Of a stretch of DNA of 64,000 nt, positions 834-64,000 are shown in pieces (the first letter of the stretch is position 1; each line of letters starts with the position of its first letter). The notes under the pieces are model-generated. The model worked only from the letters and a program-made list of their open reading frames with translations, was not told the DNA's origin and made no database searches. The position numbers were made by a program, and so were the translations under genes. The stretch spans positions 62,001-126,000 of IMG/VR virus record IMGVR_UViG_3300031344_000002; one strand, given 5' to 3'.

Positions 834-3674
834 ATGGCAACACAATTAAATACAAATATAAAAGTTTCTGCACCATTACCAATTGATAAACGATATTTAA
901 GCGAAAGAACTATTGGTGGTAGTCCATTACCATATTCAGCAACAACTGAAGTATTTTCAATAATTCCTTCAAGTGAAAGATATATTGGGTTAACTGTTAA
1001 TATTAATAATGTTGATTATTGGTTTAAAAATAATACAACGAATTTAATATTAAAAACGATTACTGGTTCAACATCAAATATTAATAATGTTACTGGCGGA
1101 ACAAATATTGGATATTTTAGTGGAAAAACTGGTATACAAATGCTTAATTTAAGTGGTGCTGGTTTTGGTATATATGAGGGTGATTATTATTCAGAATATA
1201 ATAATTATTATCGAGATAGTTCAGGATTTGTAAGACTTGGTACACCAACATATCATGGAGCACTTAGACGTGCATATATAAATTCTACAAGAACAGTTTC
1301 TTGGTTATTTGACCAAGGTTTAAATGCATGGCAATTAAGTAATTTTGATATTACTTTATATATTGGAAGTTATGTTCCCATTATTGGATATACAGGTAGT
1401 GGATATACAAATACTACATGGAATGGAAGTAATTATAATGGTTCTGTTTTAGTTACTGCGTATGGTAGTTTAAATACTGGTAATACAATTACAATAGGAA
1501 GTCCAGTTTTTTCAGATAAACAATTTAGTGAACTTAGATTTAAAACATTAAAATCGAAGACACCGAATTTCGTTAATATAAGTAATGATGATAGTTTTAT
1601 ATATTTTTCTGGTTCATCATCATTAATAAAAGGTAAAAATGTTGGTACTGGTATTGGTGTTTATTCTGGTGTAACTGGAAATACTTTACAATTTAAAAGT
1701 ATTCTTGGAACAGGTAGTACTACAGTAATAAATAATGGTGGTACTATTCTCATATCTTCAAGTAATGCAATAACTGGTGCAACCAATGGTTTAACAAAAG
1801 ATAATCTAAATATTAAATTAGGTGGAACATTAACTGGTAATACAGTAATAACTGATAATCGTGTAACGCCTGTTGGTATTCAATATGGCGGAAATTATGC
1901 GCCATATTTTACTTCTCGTTCACTTGTTGATAGGGGTTATGTTGAATCGGTTGCAACTGGACTTATTCCTAAATTAGCAGTAAAAGTTGCAACAATTTCG
2001 GCAATAACATTAAATGGATTAACATTAATTGATGGAATTCCTGTTACTGATGGTGATAGAGTTCTAGTAAAGAATCAATATGATGAAACTAAAAATGGAA
2101 TATATAGTGCAAGTACAAGTACTTGGATTCGTGCAACTGATTTTAATTTTGTACCTACTGGAGAAGTAGCACAAGGTGCAATAATTCCAGTTGTTACTGG
2201 TAATACACAAAAAAATACTCTATGGGTATTGGTCACACCAAATCCAATTATTAGTGGTGTTACATCCTTAACATTTGGATTATTTAATAATCCAATATTA
2301 AATCAAGGTACTGGTATTTTAATTATAGGTAATACTATTTCTGTTGATGGTTCAAGTCTTGCTGGAAATTCAATTAATTGGACTGGTAATACATTTAATG
2401 TTAATATTAATAGTGGAACATTACAAACAGCTTTAAATTCTAAATTAAACACAACAACATTTAATAATTATTCAGGAATTACCGTTCCAACAAATTATTA
2501 TAATAAAACACAAATTAATAATTATACTGGTAAAACCAACACTGTTATAATTAATGCAATTACTGGTGCAACTAATGGTTTGACAAAGCAAGGTAATCAT
2601 GATGTGGTATTGGGTGGTACAATAACGGGCGCAACGACAATTGCTATTAATAGTGGTGGTACTTTAACAATTGTTGATAATCGTACATCAAAAATTGGTA
2701 TACAATATGCTGCAAATTATAATTCTGGATTTACTGATAATTCTCTTATAACTAAAAAATATGTTGATGATAATATAATTAATACAACTGGTGCTACTAT
2801 ATATAATTTAGGTTCACCTGCTGCAATAACTTTAGGTGGAATTGTTTCAGGAACAACATTAACTGGAAAAACTACTAATCAAATACTTGAAGAATTATTA
2901 GTTCCAACATTAAATCCAACATTAATAGCACCTTCAAGTACAATTGCTTTAAATCCATCTGGAACATTTGAGGTTGGTTGTAATATATCAACATTATGTG
3001 TCACAACCGCATTTAATCAAGGTTGTATTTGTCCACAATATTCTGCTATTTGTGATAAAAGAAGTGGTGATGCTAATCATTATTGCTTTACTGGCGCACA
3101 AGTTGCAAATGATTATGCATGTACTTCAACAAGTTTAATAGAATATGCAACAAATTATATTATTTCTGCTGGTACTGCAACTTGGGGTTCATGTGTATTT
3201 TATGATGCAGGTGTTCAACCAAAAAATAGTAAAGGCGGTAATTATTCAACACCACTTTCTTCAAATAATACTGGTGCACAAACAGCTACTTTAACTGGTA
3301 TATATCCATATTTTTATGGCAAATGTACTTGTCCGGGTTCTGCTGGAGCAAATCGTCCCACAGCAACAAGTTCAATGGTTTCTAGTGGTACAAAAATTGT
3401 TGCAAGTTCATCAAGTTCTATTAGTATCAATTTTAATAGTGGTAGTGATGATTATTTGTGGTTTGCATATCCAGCATCAAATACAGATAAAACATGTTGG
3501 TGTATAACTGCACTTAATAATGGTTCTATTGGTGGCGGTATTAGTCCTGCATGTAATTTATTTCCATCATCTAATATAATTAGTGTTACAACAACTTGTT
3601 GGTCAGGACAAAGTTATAAAGTTTATATTAGTAATAAACAAACATGTGTAACTTCATCAATGTTAATAAGTTAA
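834..3674 (+). CDS. Tail fibre-like structural protein (946 aa)
   Basis: T/G/N-rich, with repeated NGLTK.G...LGGT(L/I)TG and SL(V/I)(D/T)K.YV stalk motifs and a VLVKNQ...KNGIY...W.RATD module typical of phage fibres. Confidence 0.7.
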   Translation: MATQLNTNIKVSAPLPIDKRYLSERTIGGSPLPYSATTEVFSIIPSSERYIGLTVNINNVDYWFKNNTTNLILKTITGSTSNINNVTGGTNIGYFSGKTGIQMLNLSGAGFGIYEGDYYSEYNNYYRDSSGFVRLGTPTYHGALRRAYINSTRTVSWLFDQGLNAWQLSNFDITLYIGSYVPIIGYTGSGYTNTTWNGSNYNGSVLVTAYGSLNTGNTITIGSPVFSDKQFSELRFKTLKSKTPNFVNISNDDSFIYFSGSSSLIKGKNVGTGIGVYSGVTGNTLQFKSILGTGSTTVINNGGTILISSSNAITGATNGLTKDNLNIKLGGTLTGNTVITDNRVTPVGIQYGGNYAPYFTSRSLVDRGYVESVATGLIPKLAVKVATISAITLNGLTLIDGIPVTDGDRVLVKNQYDETKNGIYSASTSTWIRATDFNFVPTGEVAQGAIIPVVTGNTQKNTLWVLVTPNPIISGVTSLTFGLFNNPILNQGTGILIIGNTISVDGSSLAGNSINWTGNTFNVNINSGTLQTALNSKLNTTTFNNYSGITVPTNYYNKTQINNYTGKTNTVIINAITGATNGLTKQGNHDVVLGGTITGATTIAINSGGTLTIVDNRTSKIGIQYAANYNSGFTDNSLITKKYVDDNIINTTGATIYNLGSPAAITLGGIVSGTTLTGKTTNQILEELLVPTLNPTLIAPSSTIALNPSGTFEVGCNISTLCVTTAFNQGCICPQYSAICDKRSGDANHYCFTGAQVANDYACTSTSLIEYATNYIISAGTATWGSCVFYDAGVQPKNSKGGNYSTPLSSNNTGAQTATLTGIYPYFYGKCTCPGSAGANRPTATSSMVSSGTKIVASSSSSISINFNSGSDDYLWFAYPASNTDKTCWCITALNNGSIGGGISPACNLFPSSNIISVTTTCWSGQSYKVYISNKQTCVTSSMLIS

Positions 3675-3694
3675 TAAATAAAAAATATAAAAAA

Positions 3695-6091
3695 ATGGCA
3701 ATACAATTAAATGATAATTTAAAGATTAATGTTGGAAATCCAATTGATTCAAGATATTTAAATTCTTGTAATTATCCATATGTGAGTGTTGCAGCAGTTA
3801 ATGCTGGCATTCCTCAATCACAAAGATATAGTGGTTTAACAGTAAATATACTTAATACTGAATATTGGTATCAAACAGGTACTAATGATGGTAATTTGGT
3901 AATTAAAAATGTTGGTAGTACTGGTGGTACAACTGTATGCGCAAATAATGGTTTAACAAAAAATGGTAATATAGTATCGCTAGGTGGAACATTAACAGGT
4001 AATACAACAATATCATTACCCCTCAATTCTCAAAGAAGTTTTACTGTTGGTAATGGCAATACTGCTCATTTTTATGGCGGTTATTTTTCTGTAAAAATAG
4101 ATTGTGTTTTTGCATGTAATAATGGAATATTTTTGGGTGCAAGAAATAGTTCTGGAAGTGGTACTGAAAGTGTAATACAATTAATTCCTTCTGGAATTAC
4201 AATTTGTGGTGTAAATAATAACAATTTTAGCGGTATTAATTATTATTGTGATTATAGCGTAAATTATACTAATCGTTCATTAGTTGACAAAGGTTATGTT
4301 CTTAGTGTAATTTCTGGTAGTACTGGTGGAACCAATATATGTAGTACAGATAAACAAATAATATTTAATAGTTCTAATATTCTTTGCGGTAGTAATAATT
4401 TTACATATAATTGCACAGGTGATTCATTAGCAGTAAATCAATACAGTGGTGCATTAGGCTGTAATTCAGTAGCAATGGCTGGTGGTTATACATATAGTGG
4501 TTATTCAGTAGCAATGGCTGGTAGTCAAACATTTGGTTTTTATTCAGTAGCAATGGCTAGTGGTGCAGCATGTGGTTATAATTCAGTAGCAATGGCACAA
4601 GGTACTGCTTGTGGTGGTGGTTCAGTAGCAATGGCTGGTGGTACTGCATATGCTGATTGTTCAGTAGCAATGGCTTTTGCTGCAGCATGTGGTTATAATT
4701 CAGTAGCAATGGCTGGTGGTACTACATGTGGTTGTATGTCAGTAGCAATGGCTAATGGCAATACAACTACTGGTGGAACAAATTCTGTAGCAATGGCTGG
4801 TGGTTATACTTGTGCTGATTATTCAATAGCAATGGCTAATGGTACTGCTTGTGGTATTAATTCAATAGCAATGGCTAATGGAATTGCATTTAATTGTTAT
4901 TCGGTAGCAATGACTGGTGGTCATACATGTGGTGATAATTCAGTAGCAATTGGTAATGGAAGTATTACATGTGGTTATAATTCAGTAGCAATAATTGGTG
5001 GTATTGCATGTGGCGATAGTTCAGTAGCAATGAATGGTGGTATTACAAATACTGGTGCAACATGTTCAATAGCAATGATTGGTGGCGATACATTTGGTTA
5101 TAATTCAGTAGCAATAATTGGTGGTATTACAAATACTGGTGCAACATGTTCAATAGCAATGATTGGTGGTAATACTTATAGTTGTGGTTCAATAGCAATG
5201 GTTAATGGTTCTACATTTGGTAATAATTCAGTAGCAATGGCTGGCGGTTATACTTGTGGTTGTTATTCAGTAGCAATGGCAGGTAGCTGTGCATATGCTG
5301 ATTTTTCAGTAACAATGGCTGGTGGTGCTGCAAATGGTTGTTGTTCAGTAGCAATGGCAAATGGCACTGCATGGGGATATCTGTCAGTAGCTATAAGTCC
5401 ATTTACATACGCTTATGGCTGTAATTCAGTAGCAATGGCTGGTGGTTATACATATAGTGGTGGAACAAATTCAGTAGCAATGGCTAGTGGTCAAGCATGT
5501 GGTTGTATGTCAGTGGCAATGGTTGGTGGTATTGCATGTGGTCAAAATTCAGTAGCAATGGCTGGTGGTACTACTTGTAGTGGTGGAACAAATTCAGTAG
5601 CGATTGCTGATGGTACTACTTGTGGTTGTAATTCAGTAGCAATGGCTAATGGTGTTACTTGTGGTGATTATTCGATAGCTATGGCACAAGGTACTACTTA
5701 TGGTTGTAATTCAGTAGCAATGGGTGGTGGTCAAGCAGGTGGTGATAATTCAGTAGCAATGGGCGGTTCTGTTGCTGGTGGTAATTATTCAGTAGCAATG
5801 GGTAATGGTGCTGCTAGTGGTATTGGTTCAGTAGGAATGGCTGGTGGTAATGCTTGTGGTTGTTATTCAGTGGCAATGGCTGGTGGTTGTGCAATTATTG
5901 ATTGTTCAATTTCTATGGGTAATTTATTTTGTGGTAATACTACTGGCAATACCGTTACAATAAATAATATATTAAAATTAGCACCAACAACAACACCAGC
6001 AAATCCAACTTTAGGTACAATATTTACTTGTACTGACAATCATTTATATTTTTATAATGGAAGTGCTTGGAAACAATTAGATAATCTATAA
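3695..6091 (+). CDS. Tail fibre/adhesin with about 37 SVAM-type beta-roll repeats (YadA-head-like)
   Basis: Likely start is the ATG at 3695 (MAIQLND, paralogous to MATQLNT at 834). Repeats of x-S-V-A-M-A-x-G occur mostly every 13 aa. Confidence 0.7.
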   Translation: MAIQLNDNLKINVGNPIDSRYLNSCNYPYVSVAAVNAGIPQSQRYSGLTVNILNTEYWYQTGTNDGNLVIKNVGSTGGTTVCANNGLTKNGNIVSLGGTLTGNTTISLPLNSQRSFTVGNGNTAHFYGGYFSVKIDCVFACNNGIFLGARNSSGSGTESVIQLIPSGITICGVNNNNFSGINYYCDYSVNYTNRSLVDKGYVLSVISGSTGGTNICSTDKQIIFNSSNILCGSNNFTYNCTGDSLAVNQYSGALGCNSVAMAGGYTYSGYSVAMAGSQTFGFYSVAMASGAACGYNSVAMAQGTACGGGSVAMAGGTAYADCSVAMAFAAACGYNSVAMAGGTTCGCMSVAMANGNTTTGGTNSVAMAGGYTCADYSIAMANGTACGINSIAMANGIAFNCYSVAMTGGHTCGDNSVAIGNGSITCGYNSVAIIGGIACGDSSVAMNGGITNTGATCSIAMIGGDTFGYNSVAIIGGITNTGATCSIAMIGGNTYSCGSIAMVNGSTFGNNSVAMAGGYTCGCYSVAMAGSCAYADFSVTMAGGAANGCCSVAMANGTAWGYLSVAISPFTYAYGCNSVAMAGGYTYSGGTNSVAMASGQACGCMSVAMVGGIACGQNSVAMAGGTTCSGGTNSVAIADGTTCGCNSVAMANGVTCGDYSIAMAQGTTYGCNSVAMGGGQAGGDNSVAMGGSVAGGNYSVAMGNGAASGIGSVGMAGGNACGCYSVAMAGGCAIIDCSISMGNLFCGNTTGNTVTINNILKLAPTTTPANPTLGTIFTCTDNHLYFYNGSAWKQLDNL
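4457..5920 (+). repeat. Coding tandem repeat array (tcagtagcaatggct core, period 39-45 nt)
   Basis: About 37 in-frame units counted from the translation. An exact 45-nt copy sits at 4457-4501 and 5417-5461. Confidence 0.9.
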
Positions 6092-16153: not shown

Positions 16154-16792
16154 ATGATATTAAAAAAGATAGATTTACTCGAAATAATCGATTCGAATGG
16201 TGAGTTAATTGGTAAAAATGATACGCCTACAAATGGCAGTGATTTAGAAAGTCAAGCTAATAATACTACCGATTATAATGCCAAAATTGGCACACAACCC
16301 TTTAGATATGATATGTTGGGTCGTTTTGGATTTTCCAATTTAAGTTTTACTGAGGGAAAAGAAAATCAAGAACAGAAAGAATTATTAAAAGATTTGGCAG
16401 TACTTGTTCATGAAAAATATATGAAGGATTTACAATATTTTTATAAAAACCCCAATAAATTAAAAAGTGATTATAGAAAAGTTGTTGGTGATAAATTTCA
16501 TTCAGAGGAATGTCAAAAAGCAGATATGGAATGGGCAAAAAAAATAATTAAAATAATGGAACTATATTTCGAAAATGTATTTAAAGAACCAATTGACGAA
16601 ATTAATTCAATTACGGAAAGTAAGGTAGAGGAAGATAAACTCGTCAATAAAAAATCTGAAGATGAAATATCAAAAAAATCTGAAAACCAAGAAATTAAAA
16701 ACAAAAAACTCCAAAAAGTTGCTGGTTTAATCAATAAACTCGATAAAAAAGATATTGATAAACTAATAAATTTATTGGAAAGAAGTAGATAA
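16154..16792 (+). CDS. Hypothetical (putative virion-internal) protein
   Basis: 212-aa charged ORF behind a late motif; contains LLE and ITE motifs. Confidence 0.5.
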   Translation: MILKKIDLLEIIDSNGELIGKNDTPTNGSDLESQANNTTDYNAKIGTQPFRYDMLGRFGFSNLSFTEGKENQEQKELLKDLAVLVHEKYMKDLQYFYKNPNKLKSDYRKVVGDKFHSEECQKADMEWAKKIIKIMELYFENVFKEPIDEINSITESKVEEDKLVNKKSEDEISKKSENQEIKNKKLQKVAGLINKLDKKDIDKLINLLERSR

Positions 16793-17583
16793 TGAATAAT
16801 ATGGCGAATAAAGAATTATATGATAAAACCTATCCTGTGCCTCAAAACATACTTAAAAGTATTGAGGTGGCGAAAGCATCTACTTCAGATAGTAATGGTC
16901 TAAAAAGGGCAAATTTTATACTTAAAAACGGTGTTTTAACATATCAGGCATTAAAAAGATTAAAGAATTTTTTTGATTATTTTAATCCACAAACTCAAAA
17001 TAAAACACAATATGCACTTGCTGGTGGTGATTTAATGAAACGATTTATTGAAACATCGTTAGCGCAAGATAGGGCAGGTGTTGTACGTAGTAAGAAAATT
17101 AAACAGGATATAACCACCAATCCTAATTCGGAATTAAAACCTTATCAAAGACCAAGGTTAAACGAAGAAAGGAAAGAATTAAAAAAAAACGCTGTTGCAG
17201 TAATTGTCAATAATGATAATAAAATTTTATTACTTAAAAGAGCAGATGATAGTAAAATTTGGATGCCAAATAAATGGTCATTGGTTGGTGGTGAAATGAA
17301 AAAAGATGAAACACCACAACAAGCCATTGAGAGAGAAATACTTGAAGAAACTAAATTAGAAATTAAAAAATTTATAAAATCACTTAGTATTCAAAGAAAA
17401 ACTGATAGTATTGAACACGTATTTGCTTGTAGATATACTGGTGAAGAAACAGATGTTAAATTAAATGATGAAAATACAAAGTATGGCTGGTATGATGTTT
17501 CTGAAATGAAATATTTAGATACTGTACCACATTTAATAGAATATATTACACTTGTATTTAAATCATATGAAGATGAAAAATAA
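16792..17583 (+). CDS. Nudix hydrolase with N-terminal helical domain
   Basis: Nudix box GGEMKKDETPQQAIEREILEETKLE; an LNE motif sits at the domain junction. Confidence 0.85.
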   Translation: MNNMANKELYDKTYPVPQNILKSIEVAKASTSDSNGLKRANFILKNGVLTYQALKRLKNFFDYFNPQTQNKTQYALAGGDLMKRFIETSLAQDRAGVVRSKKIKQDITTNPNSELKPYQRPRLNEERKELKKNAVAVIVNNDNKILLLKRADDSKIWMPNKWSLVGGEMKKDETPQQAIEREILEETKLEIKKFIKSLSIQRKTDSIEHVFACRYTGEETDVKLNDENTKYGWYDVSEMKYLDTVPHLIEYITLVFKSYEDEK

Positions 17584-19656: not shown

Positions 19657-22600
19657 ATGACATACGAAGAATTTAAACAAAATTTTTTAGCGGATTTTCT
19701 TAATATAAAATCATTTGCAGGTAGAATACAATATGCTAATGAACATCTATCAAGAATTGGTAGTGGTAGTGGTAGGATTGTGTATGATATTGATGGTCAA
19801 AAAGTATTAAAATTAGCAAAAAATGCTAAAGGTATTGCACAAAATAAAGCAGAAGCTGGTATTGGATATTATGGGGATACGCAACATATTGTTACAATTA
19901 TTTATGATAATGCAGATGATGATAGTTGGTTAATTGCAGAAAAAGCAAAAAAAGTAAACGAAAAAAGAATTAAAGAATTAACGAGTATTCCAAGTCTTAA
20001 TGATTTGTATTATTATTTAAGAAATAATGAATCTGAAAATAAAGGTGGAAGTGGAATTTTTGGACAAAACGAAAATATTAAAAATCAATTAGATAATAAT
20101 GAATTTATCATTGATTTAATAGATTTTGTTGCAAATTATTCAATAAGTGTTGGTGATTTGGGTAGACCAAGTTCTTATGGTGAAGTACTCCGTGATGGTC
20201 AACCAACAATTGTATTAACAGATTATGGATTAAATGATGAAGTATATGATACACATTATAATCCACAAAAAAAGCAAAAATATCGTATGTATGAATTATA
20301 CAATTTTGCTGATGGTAATGATGATATTCTTTCTGATATAGGTAATGTTGGACAAGACCAAAGACATGGAATGTGGGCATTAATGCCATATGGTGTAGGT
20401 GATGGCGATGGTGTAATAAATGAAGAATTTAAAGAATTTATTATAAGAAGAAGCATATATCCAAATAAACCAATAAAGAATATGCCAGAACTTGTAGATA
20501 ATTTTCATGAATGTGTAAATAATCTTAAAGAAACATTAAATCATGTAGATGATAAGAAAAAATTCTATAATAATTTATTGGAACTTCAAAAATATCTTAT
20601 TTCTCAAAATTATTATGATAGAGAACCACTTAGTAGTGAAGAATATGTTATAAATGAAGATATTGAACAACAATCGCCACAAGTTCAAAAATTTACATTA
20701 ACTGATGTAAATTATGCAACTGAAATTGCTAAGACTAGTGCTGAAAAATTAGGGTTTAAAATATTAAAAACAATTGGCGGTGGTTCAAATGGTTTTGCAT
20801 TTGATATTGGCGATACAAAAATTTTTAAACTTTCTGCTGATATTAGTGAAGCAGATGCAGCAACAAAATTAATAAGAGTAAAACCAACACATCTTGCAAT
20901 TGTTTATAATTTATATAAAATAGTGGATACTGAAAAAAATCAGGCATTCTTTGGAATAATCGAACGTCATATAACAGATAAACCACTTCAACAATTTAAT
21001 CGAAACATAGATATTATTAATAGTATTATGCCAAATAATATGTCGATAGTTGATTTTTATATAATGATGAAAAAGAATTTTGATTATAATAATTTAATTA
21101 ATTTAGCAAAAAATATACTTACAGAAAAACCTGAAGTAAATATTTCAAATATAGAAAGACAACAAGCATATGATTGGATGATAGGATTGTTCGAAATTAA
21201 AAAAGAATTATTGAGTTATAATATTAAATCAGATGATTATGGTAATCCAGAAAATCTTGGATATGAGGGGGGTATTTTAAAATTCTTTGATTTTGGTGGT
21301 TATCGAGGTGTTAATGAACCTGATTTGGGAGATGCAAATATTATATTTTTACCTGAAAACGAAGAAATATTAGATGAAAAATATAATAGAAATATTGCAG
21401 ATAATATAGCCAATCAAATTGCAAAAACAAAAGGATATAATGAACCAAAATATGTAGATGCTGGTGAATATGGTGTTGCTTATGATATTGGTGATGATAA
21501 AATTTTAAAAATAACTGCAGATAATAGTGAAGCAGCAGAAAATTTAAAACTTATAAATAAACCATTAAAATATATAGCACAACCATATAATGTATTTACA
21601 ATCGATTCAAAAAATACATATATTTCTAAAACATATGCAATTGTTTTGGAAAAATTAAAAACAGACCCACAAAAATTTAAAAGACTTAAAGAAAGAATTG
21701 ATTTTATTTTTGGAAAAATATTTAATCTCAGACTTTATGATATTATTGATTATTATATAAATGGATATGGGGACATAGATACAAAAAAAATTGATGGATA
21801 TATGTCAAAAAATCCAGAAGATGCTGAATTTTTTTATTCTATATTAAGAATTGCTGAAGAAGCAAAACAATATGGAGTTGAAAGTTTGGATTATTTTAAT
21901 TATACTAATTTAGGATATAAAAAAAATGGAGTAATTGCATTTTTTGATGTGGGATTTAGTAATGGTTACTTACAACCGAATGGTGCAGAAAATATAAAAA
22001 TAACTGAAGATGGAACTTCAAAATTCTCAACACCAAATAGTATTGGACAAGATAATTTTCCACCATATGAAAATAATGATACATCTCCAGTTACAGATAA
22101 TAACGTACCAACAACTCCAGAAAGTGTAAAAGAAGATTTAGAATATCATCATGTTGTAGGTGATGCAACACAAGATAAATTTGCTCTTGATGAAATTGGA
22201 AAAAAATCATTTATGAAGGGAGCACAAGCTGTTACAGTAAAAAAGAAATGTAGATTAGGTGGTTTGGGAAATACAAGTGTAGCTTGTAATCAAGGTGATA
22301 TTAATAATCTTGATATTAAAACAATTAATGAAAATAATAATATTGATTTATTAAAATTGCAATTAGCACAAGCAGCACAAAAAGTTTATAATGAATGGGA
22401 ACAAGATGAAAATGGTATGGATTGTACATTAGGTTCTGGTGGTATATGTCAAGATATTGCTGGTGCAATGTGTGATATATTAATAAATAATAATATTGAA
22501 TGTACAACAGTATCTCAGCAAATTGGTGACCAACATGTTTATGTTGTCGCTCAAACAGACGATGGTATATATGATATAGATATTTCACCATATTTATATG

Positions 22601-25600
22601 AAGAAGGTAGTGGTTATTGTTGGAAAAAAATACCTGATGTTGAATTTAATGAAAGATATATTAATATAAATAAAATAAGTTCAGACCCTAATGATTATGA
22701 AAAATATATAATTAATGAAAATTATAATAAAAAAATTAATGAACAATCAATTAATGAAACAAATTTACCGCATAATAAAACTTTTTGGGCATGGGTGTCA
22801 CCAGATAATAAATTCACTGAAGTATCTAAACTTCAACATGCAGGATTTATTGAAGGAAAATATCCTGAACTATCATATGATTTAGATGCGTTATTTTATC
22901 AAGCATTTAGAGAAGGTTGGGTACGAGTAATTTATGAATATAACTCAGACAGATTTATGGGTACTTTATCTATGAATGGATTTGATAAAGAAAGAGTTAA
23001 ATCAGTATTTAAGGACATGTTTTTTGATTTAATTAAATATGGAAATAATATAATTTATTTAGATTATGAAGTTGGTGGTAATGCTGATATAATAAGAACA
23101 GGTAATGCGGAAGGAAAAGCAAAATTGGTGAATTATGTAAATGAACAATCAATTAAAGATTTTGAAAAACAAATTGAAAAAGATAATAAAGATGATAAAT
23201 TAGATAAACTTCTTTTATTTGAAGAAGATGACTATAAAGTATATGCAGTTAATGGTAAATATGTAAGAAGTAAAAATCCGGGACTGAATTTTGATGAATG
23301 GGTTGATGGCGGTCATCATTATGTTGATTTAGACCTACCAAAAAAAGAACAAAAATACGCTAAACATATTCCAGAAGATGAAATTTGGGTTGATGATGTA
23401 TTCATTATAAAACCTGATGATTTAGGCGCAATATTATTACATGAAACACTTGAAAGACATTTAATGAAATACTATGGTTTGAAATATAGTAATGATGGCG
23501 AAGGTAAAGATGGTGCTCATGAAATTGCAAATAAAGCAGAAGTAGAATTTAGAGAAAGAGTAAAAAATGGTTTTGGTCGTGATGTTAGTGAAGAAATTTA
23601 TACTAAATTTGTAAAAAATTATACAAAGAAACATCCAAAAAAGAAATTAAAAATTAATGAAGAAAATTATGTTGGAAAAGCATATAGAGTGAATTCTAAT
23701 TTCATTCAATCTAAAGGAACTACTGCAGGTGATGTTGTTAGATTTGAAATGAAAGAATTAGGTAATGTTGATGATTTTAATATAACTCCTGAAAAATTAA
23801 AAGAACTTGATAAATATCCAGCTAAAGATATTGTCTGGATTACAAAAACATTTGAGGATGCAAAAAGATATTCTAATGAAGATGACTTTTCAGATATCGA
23901 TGAATTTGATATTAATAATGGCGAAATTATTGGTGAAGATGGTGATGGTGGATATCTTATTTTAATTAAAAAACATAATTTAAATGAATCAATAATGATT
24001 GAAGATGATTCTCAATCAAATAATAAAATTACTGGTTTTGTAAATAATTTAAAACAAAAACCATTTATTCAATCACTTATAAATGGTTTAAAATCAGATG
24101 TTTATGTTGTTGGAGGGGCTGTTCGTGACCTTATTCTTAATAAACCAAACAAAGATATTGATTTGGTTGTAGGAAAAGTACCTATAGATACATTAATTTC
24201 ACAATTACAAAAATTTGGTAAAGTTGATGTTGTTGGTAAATCATTTGGTGTTATTAAATTTATTGATAAAGATGGTACTGACTATGATATAGCATTACCA
24301 AGGGTTGATAGAAAAAATGACGAAGGTGGTTATCGTGGCTTTGATGTTCAAAGTGATGAAAATCTCCCAATTGAAGATGAACTTATTAGAAGAGATGCAC
24401 GTTTCAATGCTATGGCAATTAATATCAATACTGGTAAATTTATTGACCCTTTAGGTGGATTAGATGATATTAAAAAGAAACAAATATCTGCAGCAAATCC
24501 TGATGCGTTTTCAGACGACCCATTAAGAGCATTAAGATTTTGTTCGTTTGCTAGTCGTTTTGGTTTCACAATTGAACCACAAACGATGCAAATGATTAAA
24601 GATAATGCGAGTAGAATTAAAGAAATTCCGCCAGAAAGAATATTAATTGAATTTGATAAAATTTTAAAAAAAGGCGACAAACGTATTGGTATACAACTGC
24701 TTAAAGACACTGGTTTATTTCAACAAATTTTTAATTTTGATTTAAAACAATCAACAATTGATAGAAGTCCATTTGAAGAAGTTAAAACAATGGGTGAGTT
24801 TATTTATTTATTAACACGATTATTACCAAATCCTGCAGAATTTTATAAAAATAATTTAAAAGGTGATATTGATACTTATAAGGAAATTAAAGCACTTGAA
24901 ATGGCATTTGATAGTGGTGAAGCAACTAATTTAATTGAAGCACGAACAGTTGCGCATAATATGTATGTAACATCACCACAATCACTTCAAAGCCAAATAA
25001 TACCTAGTGTAATTGAAACCGCAGCACAAGAATTATTACAAGGCAAATATCCAAAAGCAGTTGGTGAACTAGCAATTAATGGCAATGATTTAATTCAATT
25101 TGGATTAAAAGGTAAAGAGATTGGTGATATGTTAAAATCATTATTGTTAAAGGTATATTCAAATAATGTTAGGAATAATCGAGATGATTTATTAAATTTG
25201 ACAAGTCAAAAAAATAAATCAATAAAACAAGAAGGTGTTGCAGATAAATATGCAGAAAAAACTTTTAATGTTCCTGACTCAAATACTGCAATGGATGTTA
25301 AAGCAATGGGTGGTATAGAAAAAAATAAAGAAAAACCATATGCAATTAGTGAAGAGGGTGATTTATTTTTTAAGAACCCAAAATCATTAACAAATTTTGA
25401 TAAAAATGTTAGGGCAATTGCTGATAGTGATGGAAACTTATTTGTTGCACAAGTAAATGGTAATTTTCTTCATGGAGATATTGCAAGAACATTAGGAATT
25501 GTTGGATGGATATATGAAAATAATGATTATGTGTTGTTACATAGAGCAGGAAACACAAATAATTTTGGATTGAGTGATAGTAATTATAATGATATTAGAA

Positions 25601-26610
25601 ATTTTAAAGATATACGTGAAAGTGCAATACAAATATTAAATAAAACAAAAAAAAGAAATCCACAATATAATTTTTACCTTAAATATTTTAACAATATAGA
25701 TGATGATAGTATGCCTATTGATAATATAGGTCTTAATGAAAATATTGATGGTCAACATAAAACAATTACTGAAGAATATCATGAAGTTGGTGATGGTAAA
25801 TATGTAGTAAATAATAAAATTGTTGATATTAATTTCTTTGTTAATGAATATAATAAATGGAATACTGAAAGTGGAAGAGGAAGAGCAGAATATTCAGACC
25901 CAAATGAAGCATCAGTATTAGAATTTTTACAAAATAATTATGAAGATTTTAGCCATAATGAAAAATTAAAACATAAATTATTATGGAAACTTACAGATAA
26001 TGACGTTTTAAATGAAACACCAATTGATTCAATAACTTCAGATAATATAATAACACCGCAATATATAAAAGATGTAGAACGTAGTGATAATTATGAAAGA
26101 TATATTGAATATTATAAATATGAAAATAATTTGGAGGATGAAGATAAGGAAGTTATTGAACAAAATGAAGATTTTAAAAAATGGTTTATATGGGAATTAA
26201 AAAATAAATATGATGATGTAATAGATAAAATAAAAGAGAAAATAAAACCAAATGATACTATTGATATTTGGAGAGAAATGACAGTTGATGATAATTGGAT
26301 TTATCATATTGGTACACAAGGAAAACATTTAGGTATTTATTGGTCTTGGGAAGAAAATGCTGCTGAAGCACATTGGGGAGATAGTAAAAAATATAATAAA
26401 GCAATAATAAAAACATCTGTGAAAGAAGACAATATTGATTGGACTAATACAATATATGCTAATATGGATTTGGCTCTTGGCGAAGATGAAAAAGAAATAA
26501 CATTATTTAAAAATACATCATTAAAAATTGAAGAATTATATATAAATGGTGAAGATATTATGGATTCTCCGCAAGCAATACCAATTAAAAATAAAATATT
26601 TTATGCTTAA
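19657..26610 (+). CDS. Giant polyvalent multi-enzyme protein: three kinase-like domains, Cys-His-Asp domain, zincin, two ART-like domains, CCA-adding/poly(A) polymerase-family nucleotidyltransferase
   Basis: Kinases: GSGSGRIVY/VLKL/DYG, GGGSNGFAF/IFKL/DFG, DAGEYGVAY/ILKI/DVG. Other motifs: GICQD...HVYV...DID; HETLERH; GGAVRD..DID..RRD..FNA..DDPLR; WR..YWS..EDEKE. Confidence 0.8.
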   Translation: MTYEEFKQNFLADFLNIKSFAGRIQYANEHLSRIGSGSGRIVYDIDGQKVLKLAKNAKGIAQNKAEAGIGYYGDTQHIVTIIYDNADDDSWLIAEKAKKVNEKRIKELTSIPSLNDLYYYLRNNESENKGGSGIFGQNENIKNQLDNNEFIIDLIDFVANYSISVGDLGRPSSYGEVLRDGQPTIVLTDYGLNDEVYDTHYNPQKKQKYRMYELYNFADGNDDILSDIGNVGQDQRHGMWALMPYGVGDGDGVINEEFKEFIIRRSIYPNKPIKNMPELVDNFHECVNNLKETLNHVDDKKKFYNNLLELQKYLISQNYYDREPLSSEEYVINEDIEQQSPQVQKFTLTDVNYATEIAKTSAEKLGFKILKTIGGGSNGFAFDIGDTKIFKLSADISEADAATKLIRVKPTHLAIVYNLYKIVDTEKNQAFFGIIERHITDKPLQQFNRNIDIINSIMPNNMSIVDFYIMMKKNFDYNNLINLAKNILTEKPEVNISNIERQQAYDWMIGLFEIKKELLSYNIKSDDYGNPENLGYEGGILKFFDFGGYRGVNEPDLGDANIIFLPENEEILDEKYNRNIADNIANQIAKTKGYNEPKYVDAGEYGVAYDIGDDKILKITADNSEAAENLKLINKPLKYIAQPYNVFTIDSKNTYISKTYAIVLEKLKTDPQKFKRLKERIDFIFGKIFNLRLYDIIDYYINGYGDIDTKKIDGYMSKNPEDAEFFYSILRIAEEAKQYGVESLDYFNYTNLGYKKNGVIAFFDVGFSNGYLQPNGAENIKITEDGTSKFSTPNSIGQDNFPPYENNDTSPVTDNNVPTTPESVKEDLEYHHVVGDATQDKFALDEIGKKSFMKGAQAVTVKKKCRLGGLGNTSVACNQGDINNLDIKTINENNNIDLLKLQLAQAAQKVYNEWEQDENGMDCTLGSGGICQDIAGAMCDILINNNIECTTVSQQIGDQHVYVVAQTDDGIYDIDISPYLYEEGSGYCWKKIPDVEFNERYININKISSDPNDYEKYIINENYNKKINEQSINETNLPHNKTFWAWVSPDNKFTEVSKLQHAGFIEGKYPELSYDLDALFYQAFREGWVRVIYEYNSDRFMGTLSMNGFDKERVKSVFKDMFFDLIKYGNNIIYLDYEVGGNADIIRTGNAEGKAKLVNYVNEQSIKDFEKQIEKDNKDDKLDKLLLFEEDDYKVYAVNGKYVRSKNPGLNFDEWVDGGHHYVDLDLPKKEQKYAKHIPEDEIWVDDVFIIKPDDLGAILLHETLERHLMKYYGLKYSNDGEGKDGAHEIANKAEVEFRERVKNGFGRDVSEEIYTKFVKNYTKKHPKKKLKINEENYVGKAYRVNSNFIQSKGTTAGDVVRFEMKELGNVDDFNITPEKLKELDKYPAKDIVWITKTFEDAKRYSNEDDFSDIDEFDINNGEIIGEDGDGGYLILIKKHNLNESIMIEDDSQSNNKITGFVNNLKQKPFIQSLINGLKSDVYVVGGAVRDLILNKPNKDIDLVVGKVPIDTLISQLQKFGKVDVVGKSFGVIKFIDKDGTDYDIALPRVDRKNDEGGYRGFDVQSDENLPIEDELIRRDARFNAMAININTGKFIDPLGGLDDIKKKQISAANPDAFSDDPLRALRFCSFASRFGFTIEPQTMQMIKDNASRIKEIPPERILIEFDKILKKGDKRIGIQLLKDTGLFQQIFNFDLKQSTIDRSPFEEVKTMGEFIYLLTRLLPNPAEFYKNNLKGDIDTYKEIKALEMAFDSGEATNLIEARTVAHNMYVTSPQSLQSQIIPSVIETAAQELLQGKYPKAVGELAINGNDLIQFGLKGKEIGDMLKSLLLKVYSNNVRNNRDDLLNLTSQKNKSIKQEGVADKYAEKTFNVPDSNTAMDVKAMGGIEKNKEKPYAISEEGDLFFKNPKSLTNFDKNVRAIADSDGNLFVAQVNGNFLHGDIARTLGIVGWIYENNDYVLLHRAGNTNNFGLSDSNYNDIRNFKDIRESAIQILNKTKKRNPQYNFYLKYFNNIDDDSMPIDNIGLNENIDGQHKTITEEYHEVGDGKYVVNNKIVDINFFVNEYNKWNTESGRGRAEYSDPNEASVLEFLQNNYEDFSHNEKLKHKLLWKLTDNDVLNETPIDSITSDNIITPQYIKDVERSDNYERYIEYYKYENNLEDEDKEVIEQNEDFKKWFIWELKNKYDDVIDKIKEKIKPNDTIDIWREMTVDDNWIYHIGTQGKHLGIYWSWEENAAEAHWGDSKKYNKAIIKTSVKEDNIDWTNTIYANMDLALGEDEKEITLFKNTSLKIEELYINGEDIMDSPQAIPIKNKIFYA

Positions 26611-61943: not shown

Positions 61944-64000
61944 ATGGCAACTTTAAAACCAACATTAGCGAAACCAATAAGTGTACAGTCAAAGAAATAT
62001 GAAAGTAATTTTAATAAGACCATGCATAATGTTGCACCTGATGTTAAATTAAGTGAAAGTATCGTAATGAATGAAATTGATTCATATTTAAATGAAGAAG
62101 ATTTTAAACTTAAGAAAAAAATATTTTCATTACCAAAAATGGAAGCATTAGTTTTTTCTGACCCAAAATTAAGTGCAGAATATAATAAAATGATGGGCGA
62201 TGGTAAAGATGATAATACTGGAACAAATCGTTATGGATACCACGCAAACGAAACCGTTCAAAATATATTGTTCAACGACTATGTATTAAACAGTCCAAAA
62301 TATTTACAAAAATATAAAATGGCAATACCTGTAAAAAAAGAACGCAGGGACCAAAGCGGAATCAATCAATTAAAACAAGCAGGAAAAGAAAAAATGAAAA
62401 AGACAGATAGTACGGGAACTAAAATAGTCAAACCAACTGTTGATGAAAATGATGTGACAAAAACAAAAGTATTATTTTTAGTTAATGAAAAAGACCCAAA
62501 AAATCCTGATTTATTTGCATATTTTCCTGAAGAAAATTATGATAATCGAGGAAATTTAAAAGTTGGATATTCTCATGTTGGTCAACATGGTGGGGTAGAC
62601 CCAAGATATGCAAAAGAAAGTAGATTAGCAACTCCTGAAGAATATCAAAATCTTAAAACCGAACTTGAAAGTATTGGTTATAATTTTGATGTATTAAATT
62701 CTACAAATGAAAGTACTGGTGCTGCAGGTGGTGCTGGTGCATTTAGTCCAGCATTAGGTTATGAAAAGAAAGTTAATGAAATGACTGGTACTGGTGGCGC
62801 AGGTGGTGCTGGTGATTCTGGAAGTAATTCAAGTGGTTCTGGTGCATATGTTGGACCATCAGTATGGGGTAGTGGTGATTTGATGAAAGTTAATGGTAAA
62901 TCAAAAGTAAAAACCAAACCAATGTTTCCCGGTGGTACAATAATTCAAGAAAATAAAAATTATCTTGTTGACCCAAGTGGTTTTGAAAATTTTGTTAAAG
63001 CATTAAATGAAGAAGACCTTTCATATCAAACAAAATTAGGTCAAGACTATAAACAATCACATACTGATAGTAATAAAGGATTGGGTGTTAGTGAAGTACC
63101 ACAATCAAAAGAACGTGAAAAGAGTAAAAAGGGAATTGATGATAACACATCATTATATATTGGTCAAGATGTTGATAAAATGCGAGATGATGATGTAAAA
63201 ATTCTCCATAATGATATGACACAGAAACATTCATATTTTCCACATCCAGATAATCCAAATTTAAAAAATGATGGAATTTCTGGAGTTAAAAATGAAAATA
63301 AAGAACATGAAGATAATGTAATAATTAATAAAACCAATGCTTTTAATAGTGATACTGTAAAAGATTGGGATAAAAATGATACCAATCTTGAAATGAAAAC
63401 ATTAAAAACAGGTAAAACCGATAATCCAAATCTAAATCAAATGGAAGAAAATAAAAAAATAGCAAAAGATGTTGAAGATTTTGCTTCAACAAAACATAAA
63501 AATTTGCCAGAAAAAGTAGATGAAGATTCTACAACAATGGCAAATGCATCAAAAATGCAACCTAAAGAAGATTCGATGTCTAATAAAATGGACAATACTA
63601 CAATGCCTATTGGTATACAACAACAAGGTGGTGGTATGAATGAAGAATTTAGTTTATTAGAAGAAATAAATAACGAATTGAATGCATATTCAATTCATCA
63701 TCAAAAATTAGTGAAAATGAGTGAAGATAGAAAACCATCTGCTTTGGTTCTTAGAGACCGTGTTGGCAGTGAAAATGAAAAAAACTTTAAGAAAGATTTA
63801 CAAAATAGTGATACCAAAGAAATTATTGACATCGAGAAGGAGTTGGAATGGAAAGACCAACAAAGTAATGTTGGCAAAGACCCACAAAAATTAGGGAAAG
63901 ATATCGAAGAAAAAGAAATTAAAACAACAGATGCTAAAGGTGATGAATCTTTAAAAGATGTTGGTGATAGTACAAACGATAATGGAGATGAAATTCCAAA
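61944..64000 (+). CDS. Large 3'-truncated putative head-internal/scaffold-like protein (>685 aa), missing from the ORF track
   Basis: Hand translation MATLKPTLAKP... stays open to the window end. It is charged and low-complexity, with many x-N-E motifs and G/A/S-rich linkers. Confidence 0.7.
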   Translation, partial: MATLKPTLAKPISVQSKKYESNFNKTMHNVAPDVKLSESIVMNEIDSYLNEEDFKLKKKIFSLPKMEALVFSDPKLSAEYNKMMGDGKDDNTGTNRYGYHANETVQNILFNDYVLNSPKYLQKYKMAIPVKKERRDQSGINQLKQAGKEKMKKTDSTGTKIVKPTVDENDVTKTKVLFLVNEKDPKNPDLFAYFPEENYDNRGNLKVGYSHVGQHGGVDPRYAKESRLATPEEYQNLKTELESIGYNFDVLNSTNESTGAAGGAGAFSPALGYEKKVNEMTGTGGAGGAGDSGSNSSGSGAYVGPSVWGSGDLMKVNGKSKVKTKPMFPGGTIIQENKNYLVDPSGFENFVKALNEEDLSYQTKLGQDYKQSHTDSNKGLGVSEVPQSKEREKSKKGIDDNTSLYIGQDVDKMRDDDVKILHNDMTQKHSYFPHPDNPNLKNDGISGVKNENKEHEDNVIINKTNAFNSDTVKDWDKNDTNLEMKTLKTGKTDNPNLNQMEENKKIAKDVEDFASTKHKNLPEKVDEDSTTMANASKMQPKEDSMSNKMDNTTMPIGIQQQGGGMNEEFSLLEEINNELNAYSIHHQKLVKMSEDRKPSALVLRDRVGSENEKNFKKDLQNSDTKEIIDIEKELEWKDQQSNVGKDPQKLGKDIEEKEIKTTDAKGDESLKDVGDSTNDNGDEIP

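Follow-up and report, generated by a model that had tools for sequence, protein, structure and literature searches.

Three predicted minimal kinase domains related to the phage T7 kinase form an N-terminal array in giant polyvalent proteins of soil and peat jumbo phages

Introduction

The gp0.7 kinase of phage T7 disarms many bacterial defense systems through promiscuous phosphorylation (PMC13645617). Both this enzyme and its homolog JSS1_004 phosphorylate Ser, Thr, and Tyr promiscuously, inactivating defense proteins and redirecting the host (PMC13645617; PMC12345140), and the T7 kinase homologs of jumbophages are single-kinase proteins, as far as the text of the first of these studies says (PMC13645617). 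Truncated kinases have also been reported in phage polyvalent proteins, in which many unrelated catalytic domains share one polypeptide, and were described by Iyer et al. 2017 as the family Kinase-PolyVal (PMC5512222). Minimal kinases with a depleted C-lobe are likewise known among bacterial effectors, namely SteC, OspG, and NleH. Here, we compare with these systems a kinase-like array encoded in a 64,000-nucleotide stretch of DNA, referred to as the window (positions 62,001 to 126,000 of the IMG/VR virus record IMGVR_UViG_3300031344_000002). The sole long open reading frame (ORF) at the locus, which runs uninterrupted from 19657 to 26610 on the plus strand in the ORF list, specifies a giant multidomain polyvalent phage protein of 2317 amino acids (aa) with three kinase-like domains in its N-terminal part. 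Profile comparisons, structural models, and residue conservation suggest that these domains are minimal phosphotransferases akin to the T7 kinase, and we weigh what they may phosphorylate.

Results

Domain 1 (D1; aa 15-204 by its hidden Markov model limits, 19699-20268, plus strand) shows a Gly-rich loop (G-loop) at aa 34-43, the beta3 Lys (Lys52) within VLKL, the alphaC Glu (Glu66), the catalytic-loop string GDLGRPSS at aa 166-173, which includes Asp167, and DYG at aa 189-191, with Asp189, as the counterpart of the DFG motif. A conserved module of ~140 aa (aa 205-345; 20269-20691, plus strand) separates it from domain 2 (D2; aa 346-559, 20692-21333, plus strand), where the G-loop lies at aa 373-382, Lys391 within IFKL, and Glu398 is followed by DDYGNPEN (aa 526-533, with Asp527 and Asn533) and DFG (aa 545-547, with Asp545). 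The same succession is found in domain 3 (D3; aa 576-777, 21382-21987, plus strand): G-loop at aa 600-609, Lys618 within ILKI, Glu625, LDYFNYTN at aa 744-751 (Asp745 and Asn751), and DVG at aa 764-766 (Asp764). Every motif string quoted in the initial annotation is thus present, in one frame of this one ORF; the range given there, 19747-21970 (aa 31-771), was correctly placed but falls slightly inside the true limits of the array, aa 15-777 (19699-21987), as hidden Markov models delimit the three domains.

Canonical eukaryotic-like (Hanks-type) kinase profiles, Pkinase and PK_Tyr, matched none of the three domains. Their sole PHROGs match was phrog_4301, a family whose function is not named, on D1, and tblastn against named phage genomes returned only two hypothetical proteins of Xanthomonas jumbo phages, both matching D1. 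Since the sequence libraries gave no named relative, homolog sets were built for the domains. Word searches yielded 49 D1 homologs, mostly stand-alone proteins of ~200-240 residues, and D2 and D3 together gathered 470 representative clusters (50% identity, E<=1e-3), nearly all within proteins of 1000-2400 residues; relatives of the full-length type measure 1000-2330 aa.

AlphaFold2, run with homolog alignments, produced one model for D1 and one for D2 and D3 together, with mean values of pLDDT, the predicted score in the local distance difference test, of 91.5 and 91.3, respectively. The structure prediction proposed earlier as a check thus returned a kinase fold for all three domains. Structural matches of the models were almost exclusively protein-kinase-like (PKL). 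In Foldseek searches of the PDB, D1 retrieved ULK1, APH(2''), PsiK, PknS, and CK2, and D2/D3 retrieved JNK3, p38, APH(2'')-Ia, PknS, CaMKI, and GCN2, all with a probability of ~1. The models display the bilobal PKL core, i.e., an N-lobe sheet with helix alphaC, a hinge, a helical lobe, strands beta7-beta8, and the DFG equivalent; the stretch from the hinge to the catalytic loop holds extra helices. The aligned ranges of CDK2 (1-151), MPS1 (516-669), and PKR (257-445) end 5-13 residues past their DFG Asp, which fits the assignment of Asp545 and Asp764 as the DFG equivalents of D2 and D3. The models themselves finish within ~15-20 residues past DFG, with only a short strand or, in D1, two short helices, and an activation segment, an APE motif, and helices alphaF-alphaI are absent from the models of all three domains. 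D1-D3 are therein predicted to be truncated ("minimal") protein-kinase-like domains that end just past the DFG equivalent.

For residue conservation, all domains scoring >=100 bits were realigned (91 for D1, 42 for D2, and 94 for D3). Among the D1 homologs, Lys52, Glu66, and Asp189 are invariant (100% each) and Asp167 is kept in 98%, while the position of the loop Asn is occupied by Ser/Thr in 96% and by Asn in 2%. In the D2 set, Lys391, Glu398, Asp527, and Asn533 reach 100% and Asp545 98%; the corresponding figures for D3 are 100% for Lys618, 99% for Glu625, 89% for Asp745 (Glu in 8 sequences), 97% for Asn751, and 95% for Asp764. The catalytic residues of the PKL superfamily are thus found in all three domains, except for the replacement of the D1 loop Asn by Ser/Thr; the initial annotation had rightly pointed to the missing Asn. 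Conservation of the Lys, Glu, catalytic Asp, and DFG Asp in 89-100% of the homologs, stand-alone proteins included, argues for catalysis in all three domains, and catalysis by D1 would then use a modified metal site.

Several lines of comparison lead to the T7 kinase family (T7K; PF27024 of Pfam 38). In a viral structure library, the best matches of the models were several uncharacterized proteins of uncultured phages (E down to 3e-11), and the nearest named viral structures were T7-type protein kinases (E ~2e-6). A language-model neighbor search led to an ESM-Atlas cluster that carries Phage_T7_kinase. The T7 gp0.7 sequence taken singly gave no significant match to D1-D3. More distant multikinase proteins carry catalytic loops such as D-Y-H-S-G-N-I-M, the T7 counterpart being D-M-H-S-G-N-I-M, and 88 of 129 low-scoring domains with the pattern D-[YFW]-H-x-G-N-[IL]-M were assembled into an intermediate set. 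This set matched the T7 gp0.7 family over 147 columns (hhalign 97.8%, E 8e-13) as well as D3 (99.9%), D2 (99.6%), and D1 (96.5%). We conclude from this profile chain that D1-D3 are best placed in the T7-kinase superfamily as a divergent branch, joined to the T7 family through the intermediates.

Like T7K, D1-D3 are phage-encoded minimal kinase folds that end soon after the DFG equivalent, and they share with it an S-x-D catalytic loop and a short spacing from the beta3 Lys to the following acidic residues (K-x5-E-D in T7; K-x3-D-x-S-E in D1-D3). Unlike the T7 loop, those of D2/D3 (D-Y-x-N-x-x-N-L-G) and D1 (G-D-x-x-R-x-S-S-Y-G) are one residue longer and have no His. The setting also differs: three copies within a 2317-aa protein encoded by soil/peat jumbo phages versus one copy in an early protein of ~360 aa in Autographiviridae.

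A depleted C-lobe is common to D1-D3 and the effector kinases SteC, OspG, and NleH. The D1 family profile matches the SteC kinase N-lobe (8jbi; E 5e-5), with which it shares G-S-G-S-x-x-x-V-Y and V-x-K-x-x-x-N-x-x-G-I. However, this match is restricted to the N-lobe, SteC retains HD and DGD motifs and needs alphaF/alphaG for substrate binding (PMC13395416), and SteC, OspG, and NleH are secreted bacterial effectors with targets in eukaryotic hosts. RIO, Bud32, APH(2''), and ArkI/Ark1 showed no significant sequence relation to D1-D3, and neither the C-terminal substrate-binding subdomain of APH nor the N-terminal helix and flexible loop of RIO is seen in them.

Kinase-PolyVal (PF18762) resembles the array in that it comprises Ser/Thr/Tyr-kinase-superfamily domains devoid of the C-terminal subdomain, in polyvalent proteins and as stand-alone proteins (PMC5512222). 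Nonetheless, the PF18762 model found no match at E<=10 in the whole 218-kb record, and the same model matched 16 of 401 Bacteroidota genomes with E values of 1e-17 to 1e-65. When 12 true members from Bacteroidota were compared with D1, D2, and D3, hhalign probabilities stayed at <=2%. Iyer et al. 2017 give as family signatures a Glu before strand 2, a Gln in the final N-lobe strand, and His...Asp with an insert. The true members show these as G-A-E-Q, V-x-x-Q, and an L-H-D-E-N loop, all absent from D1-D3, which at these sites carry G-x-G, E-K/E-R, and no His. Given the missing model match, the negligible profile probability, and the lack of signatures, D1-D3 do not belong to Kinase-PolyVal.

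D2 and D3 are 31% identical (E 5e-18). The D1 and D2 profiles align with an hhalign probability of 97.6%, the N-lobe alignment being secure and the C-lobe register doubtful. A FastTree tree was computed from 133 domains of the D2/D3 type (>=120 bits, >170 model positions) and five D1 domains serving only as an outgroup, with local Shimodaira-Hasegawa-like values as supports. In this tree, the D2 domains group in a single clade with a support of 100 that lies within the D3-type domains, and the D2 and D3 of the protein studied here each group with orthologs from dozens of other phage proteins. Separate clades, each with many orthologs, imply an old duplication, which occurred before at least 22 D1-D2-D3 clusters (<=50% identity) diverged. 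D2 and D3 are therefore old paralogs, so that the initial annotation was right about paralogy but not about its recent origin.

Architectures were counted in 200 fetched homologous proteins. Among the representatives, 22 have an N-terminal D1-D2-D3 array, 23 have D1-D3, and nine have D1-D2; more distant proteins spread three to five kinase copies over 1000-2400 residues. On these counts, the D1-D2-D3 array is a conserved and widespread N-terminal module of giant jumbo-phage polyvalent proteins. The module at aa 205-345 found 75 phmmer matches among the fetched relatives (E down to 1e-64), always right after D1, and is absent from the stand-alone D1 homologs of ~200-240 aa. Downstream, a tRNA nucleotidyltransferase domain of the CCA-adding/poly(A) polymerase type occupies aa 1482-1847 (24100-25197, plus strand), as identified by Pfam (PF01743, 1.3e-21; PF12627, 5.9e-18; PF13735) and PHROGs (phrog_2244, tRNA nucleotidyltransferase, 2.1e-57). 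A CCA-adding domain was found in eight of the nine long relatives scanned, which also bear GNAT, 2H phosphoesterase/Acb1-like (2'-5' RNA ligase-like), tRNA-ligase CPD, and ART-PolyVal domains, with the downstream modules at differing positions. Three kinases, a CCA-adding enzyme, and further modules shuffled among relatives make this a polyvalent protein with the same pattern of many unrelated catalytic domains per polypeptide as described by Iyer et al. 2017 (PMC5512222). Beyond what the initial annotation recorded, the domains are truncated past DFG, they stand at the N terminus of a CCA-bearing polyvalent protein, and the array is widespread. No linkage to MuF or portal genes, a sign of virion packaging, was seen; the neighbors are DNA polymerase, helicase, NUDIX, and HNH endonuclease genes.

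The closest complete relative, a 349-kb genome, carries the orthologous gene in two pieces, a kinase part of 1163 aa and a CCA part of 1032 aa (L005 8984-16705). Between them, on the opposite strand, lies a LAGLIDADG homing-endonuclease gene of 334 aa; the CCA part is 87% identical to aa 1447-2317 of the 2317-aa protein. A second multikinase architecture, with an RNA/NAD theme, was observed in the distantly related giant proteins P0140, P0151, and P0185, where three to four kinase copies with the T7-like loop D-Y-H-S-G-N-I-M accompany T4 Rnl1-like RNA ligase and cytidylyltransferase-like domains. Variation within the gene is also evident among contigs. One from a peat metagenome skips exactly 426 nucleotides (142 codons, in frame) at 22321-22748, which removes a Cys/His-rich module (aa ~889-1031), and another from an RNA library connects 22335 with 23810 through 145 letters of other sequence; therefore, strains differ by whole modules. 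Outside the CCA domain, the region 21997-26607 (aa ~780-1475 and 1880-2317) contains at least six modules with no Pfam, NCBIfam, or PHROG match. Among them are a Cys...His...Asp-like stretch, with G-G-I-C-Q-D at aa 928 and D-Q-H-V-Y at aa 958, and, at aa 1260, the stretch L-L-H-E-T-L-E-R-H; these modules recur at differing positions in relatives. The segment right after D3 (21994-22330, aa 780-~890), with E-D-G-[ST]-S-K-F-S-T ... I-G-Q-D, has 125 matches among relatives, sometimes two in one protein, and could function as a linker or processing site.

The window belongs to a 218-kb record with a CheckV completeness of 66%, and relatives that share the gene have complete genomes of 335-519 kb with terminal repeats; the source genome is that of a soil or peat jumbo tailed phage of ~350 kb. 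Near-identical DNA occurs in metagenomes of rhizosphere, peat, and permafrost. Short contigs identical to the kinase-array gene are present in peat RNA libraries, where DNA carry-over is possible, so we make no claim of transcription. D1 homologs were also found on contigs of metagenome-assembled genomes labeled Saprospiraceae, Muiribacterium, and Bacilli. Nearby genes encode helicase, DNA polymerase, NUDIX, HNH endonuclease, glycosyltransferase, baseplate wedge, primase, and SbcCD-like nuclease proteins. The NUDIX protein (16792-17583, 263 aa), whose gene precedes that of the kinases as the third one upstream, has its hydrolase domain in the C-terminal half, and its N-terminal ~115 aa are unassigned. 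An 815-aa ORF with no PHROG match (3644-6091) lies in the only stretch of the window with a raised GC content (0.375 versus ~0.26), a stretch that also shows a strong GC skew.

Discussion

Our analysis bears out the initial annotation in its central observation, three kinase-fold domains in one phage protein, through the AlphaFold models, their structural matches, the homolog families, and the profile links. Its interpretation holds for the kinase fold, the atypical D1 loop, and the likeness to T7 gp0.7; the profile chain now places D1-D3 in the T7 superfamily, and T7-type kinases are their nearest named viral structures. The suggested recent paralogy of D2 and D3 does not hold up, for the reasons given above, and residue conservation disfavors the suggested pseudokinase role. 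We consider it somewhat probable that D1-D3 are catalytically competent minimal phosphotransferases of the T7 gp0.7 branch that phosphorylate several sets of proteins, the paralogs sharing out the substrates. Homology to the T7 kinase and the phage setting make phosphorylation of host proteins the most likely role, with RNA as a real rival substrate. Fold, homology, residue conservation, and architecture are what the data show; activity, substrates, and timing are inferred. In the favored scenario, the array would draw on ATP after infection and phosphorylate several groups of proteins, those of the host and perhaps also those of the phage. The effect would be like that of the T7 kinase, with the host redirected and its defense systems disarmed. 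The three old paralogs would divide the substrates among themselves, and distinct substrates for each domain are plausible. D1, in which Ser/Thr replaces the loop Asn and which is followed by a C-terminal module of its own, may have the most divergent chemistry or target.

A number of observations weigh against a T7-like protein kinase array. Pfam (2025 copy) gave no family at E<=1 for aa 1-340, 340-580, and 570-800, and the three domains found no NCBIfam match and no PDB chain with phmmer/hmmsearch. The profile search proposed earlier for APH, RIO, HipA, and Pkinase families thus found nothing for D1-D3 themselves; the more distant relatives match Pfam APH, ABC1, and WaaY directly, which speaks for kinase homology. 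A direct comparison of a seven-member T7-family profile with the D3 set is weak (148 columns, hhalign 38%, E 3e-4), with an alignment in register throughout, i.e., at the G-loop, beta3, beta5, the catalytic loop, and DFG. The strong link to T7 depends on intermediates that were chosen partly by their catalytic-loop pattern; the matches of the intermediate set nevertheless extend over the whole domain. D1-D3 have D-[FYV]-G (DYG, DFG, DVG) where T7 has DPV, they lack its D-x-H-S-G-N loop, and no C-terminal shutoff/DNA-binding domain accompanies them. The loop Asn that binds metal is missing from D1, whose structural neighbors include APH, RIO, and the RNA kinase Ark1 beside protein kinases. Lastly, the fused or neighboring modules (CCA-adding, 2H phosphoesterase, and, in distant proteins, T4-type RNA ligase) are RNA-repair enzymes.

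The identity of these partner modules, together with the absence of a P-loop polynucleotide kinase from these proteins, makes phosphorylation of RNA or nucleotides the main alternative. D1-D3 might, for instance, serve as the polynucleotide/tRNA kinase of an RNA-repair multienzyme that counteracts host nucleases acting on the anticodon or acceptor stem. A CCA-adding enzyme lies in the same polypeptide and in most of the long relatives scanned, 2H/2'-5' RNA ligase-like and tRNA-ligase CPD domains occur in relatives, and T4 Rnl1-like RNA ligase and cytidylyltransferase domains occur in the more distant multikinase proteins; moreover, D1-D3 have no peptide-binding C-lobe. However, the long relatives are orthologs, whose common architecture amounts to one observation rather than to independent co-occurrences, and the closest complete relative has separate genes for the kinase array and the CCA part. 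D2 and D3 find their best structural counterparts among protein kinases, the sequence relationship leads to the T7 kinase, itself a protein kinase devoid of the C-lobe, and the match to Ark1 is no better than those to dozens of protein kinases. There is also no precedent for a single protein with three to five RNA kinases. We thus regard an RNA or nucleotide kinase as unlikely, though a serious competitor. A combination of both roles is somewhat harder still to credit: tandem T7-like minimal kinases, two to five per protein, would be a jumbo-phage strategy in which at least one copy is an RNA/tRNA kinase and the others phosphorylate defense proteins. The RNA/tRNA kinase copy would then supply the polynucleotide-kinase step to the CCA-adding, 2H-phosphoesterase, and RNA-ligase modules.

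The remaining explanations touch on catalysis, substrate class, and the kinase assignment itself. One or more domains, above all D1, could be nucleotide-binding pseudokinases that regulate or scaffold a single true catalyst. This is compatible with Ser/Thr at the Mg-binding Asn position of D1, with known tandem kinase-pseudokinase pairs (TYK2 is among the two-domain structural matches), and with the minimal kinases OspG and SteC being activated only via partners or phosphorylation (PMC13395416). Yet Lys52, Glu66, Asp167, and Asp189 are 98-100% conserved in the 91 D1 homologs, a set that includes stand-alone proteins of ~220 aa with nothing to regulate, a few D1 relatives retain Asn at the loop position, and D2 and D3 keep every catalytic residue. 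Judged by these sequences, a dead pseudokinase is unlikely, and we give the regulatory scheme as a whole a low probability. Still less probable is a small-molecule kinase activity of the APH, choline-kinase, or ABC1 type, with which the domains would inactivate a compound resembling an antibiotic, a sugar or lipid, or a second messenger of defense. APH(2'') enzymes are indeed top or near-top structural matches, the kinase domains of more distant multikinase proteins match Pfam APH, ABC1, and WaaY directly around the catalytic loop, and relatives carry Acb1-like 2H domains, which degrade signaling nucleotides. But the helical substrate-binding subdomain that APH has at its C terminus is absent from D1-D3, full-length APH alignments have a root mean square deviation of 16-19 A, the Pfam matches span only the ~40-residue catalytic-loop region, and the homology chain points to the T7 kinase. 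Finally, the kinase-like motifs might have arisen by coincidence in an ORF that is AT-rich and of low complexity, in domains unrelated to kinases. Empty Pfam, NCBIfam, and PDB sequence searches for the three domains and the GC content of ~26% in the window fit this idea; against it stand the high-confidence kinase-fold models, hundreds of homologs with conserved catalytic residues, and the profile links to SteC and T7. Large homolog families, the D2-D3 and D1-D2 similarities, and the fold models go far beyond chance, and coincidence deserves hardly any credence.

To conclude, the protein kinases proposed here would represent a large branch of the T7-kinase superfamily, with 470 clusters for D2 and D3 alone, that has no named function in Pfam (2025 copy), NCBIfam, or PHROGs. 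The branch resides in uncultured jumbo phages, where it is built into giant multieffector proteins as arrays of two to five domains. If the domains are active, they would offer a natural experiment in the division of substrates by duplicated minimal kinases, make a role of the kinase fold in phage RNA repair testable, and provide a source of compact kinase scaffolds of ~200 residues.

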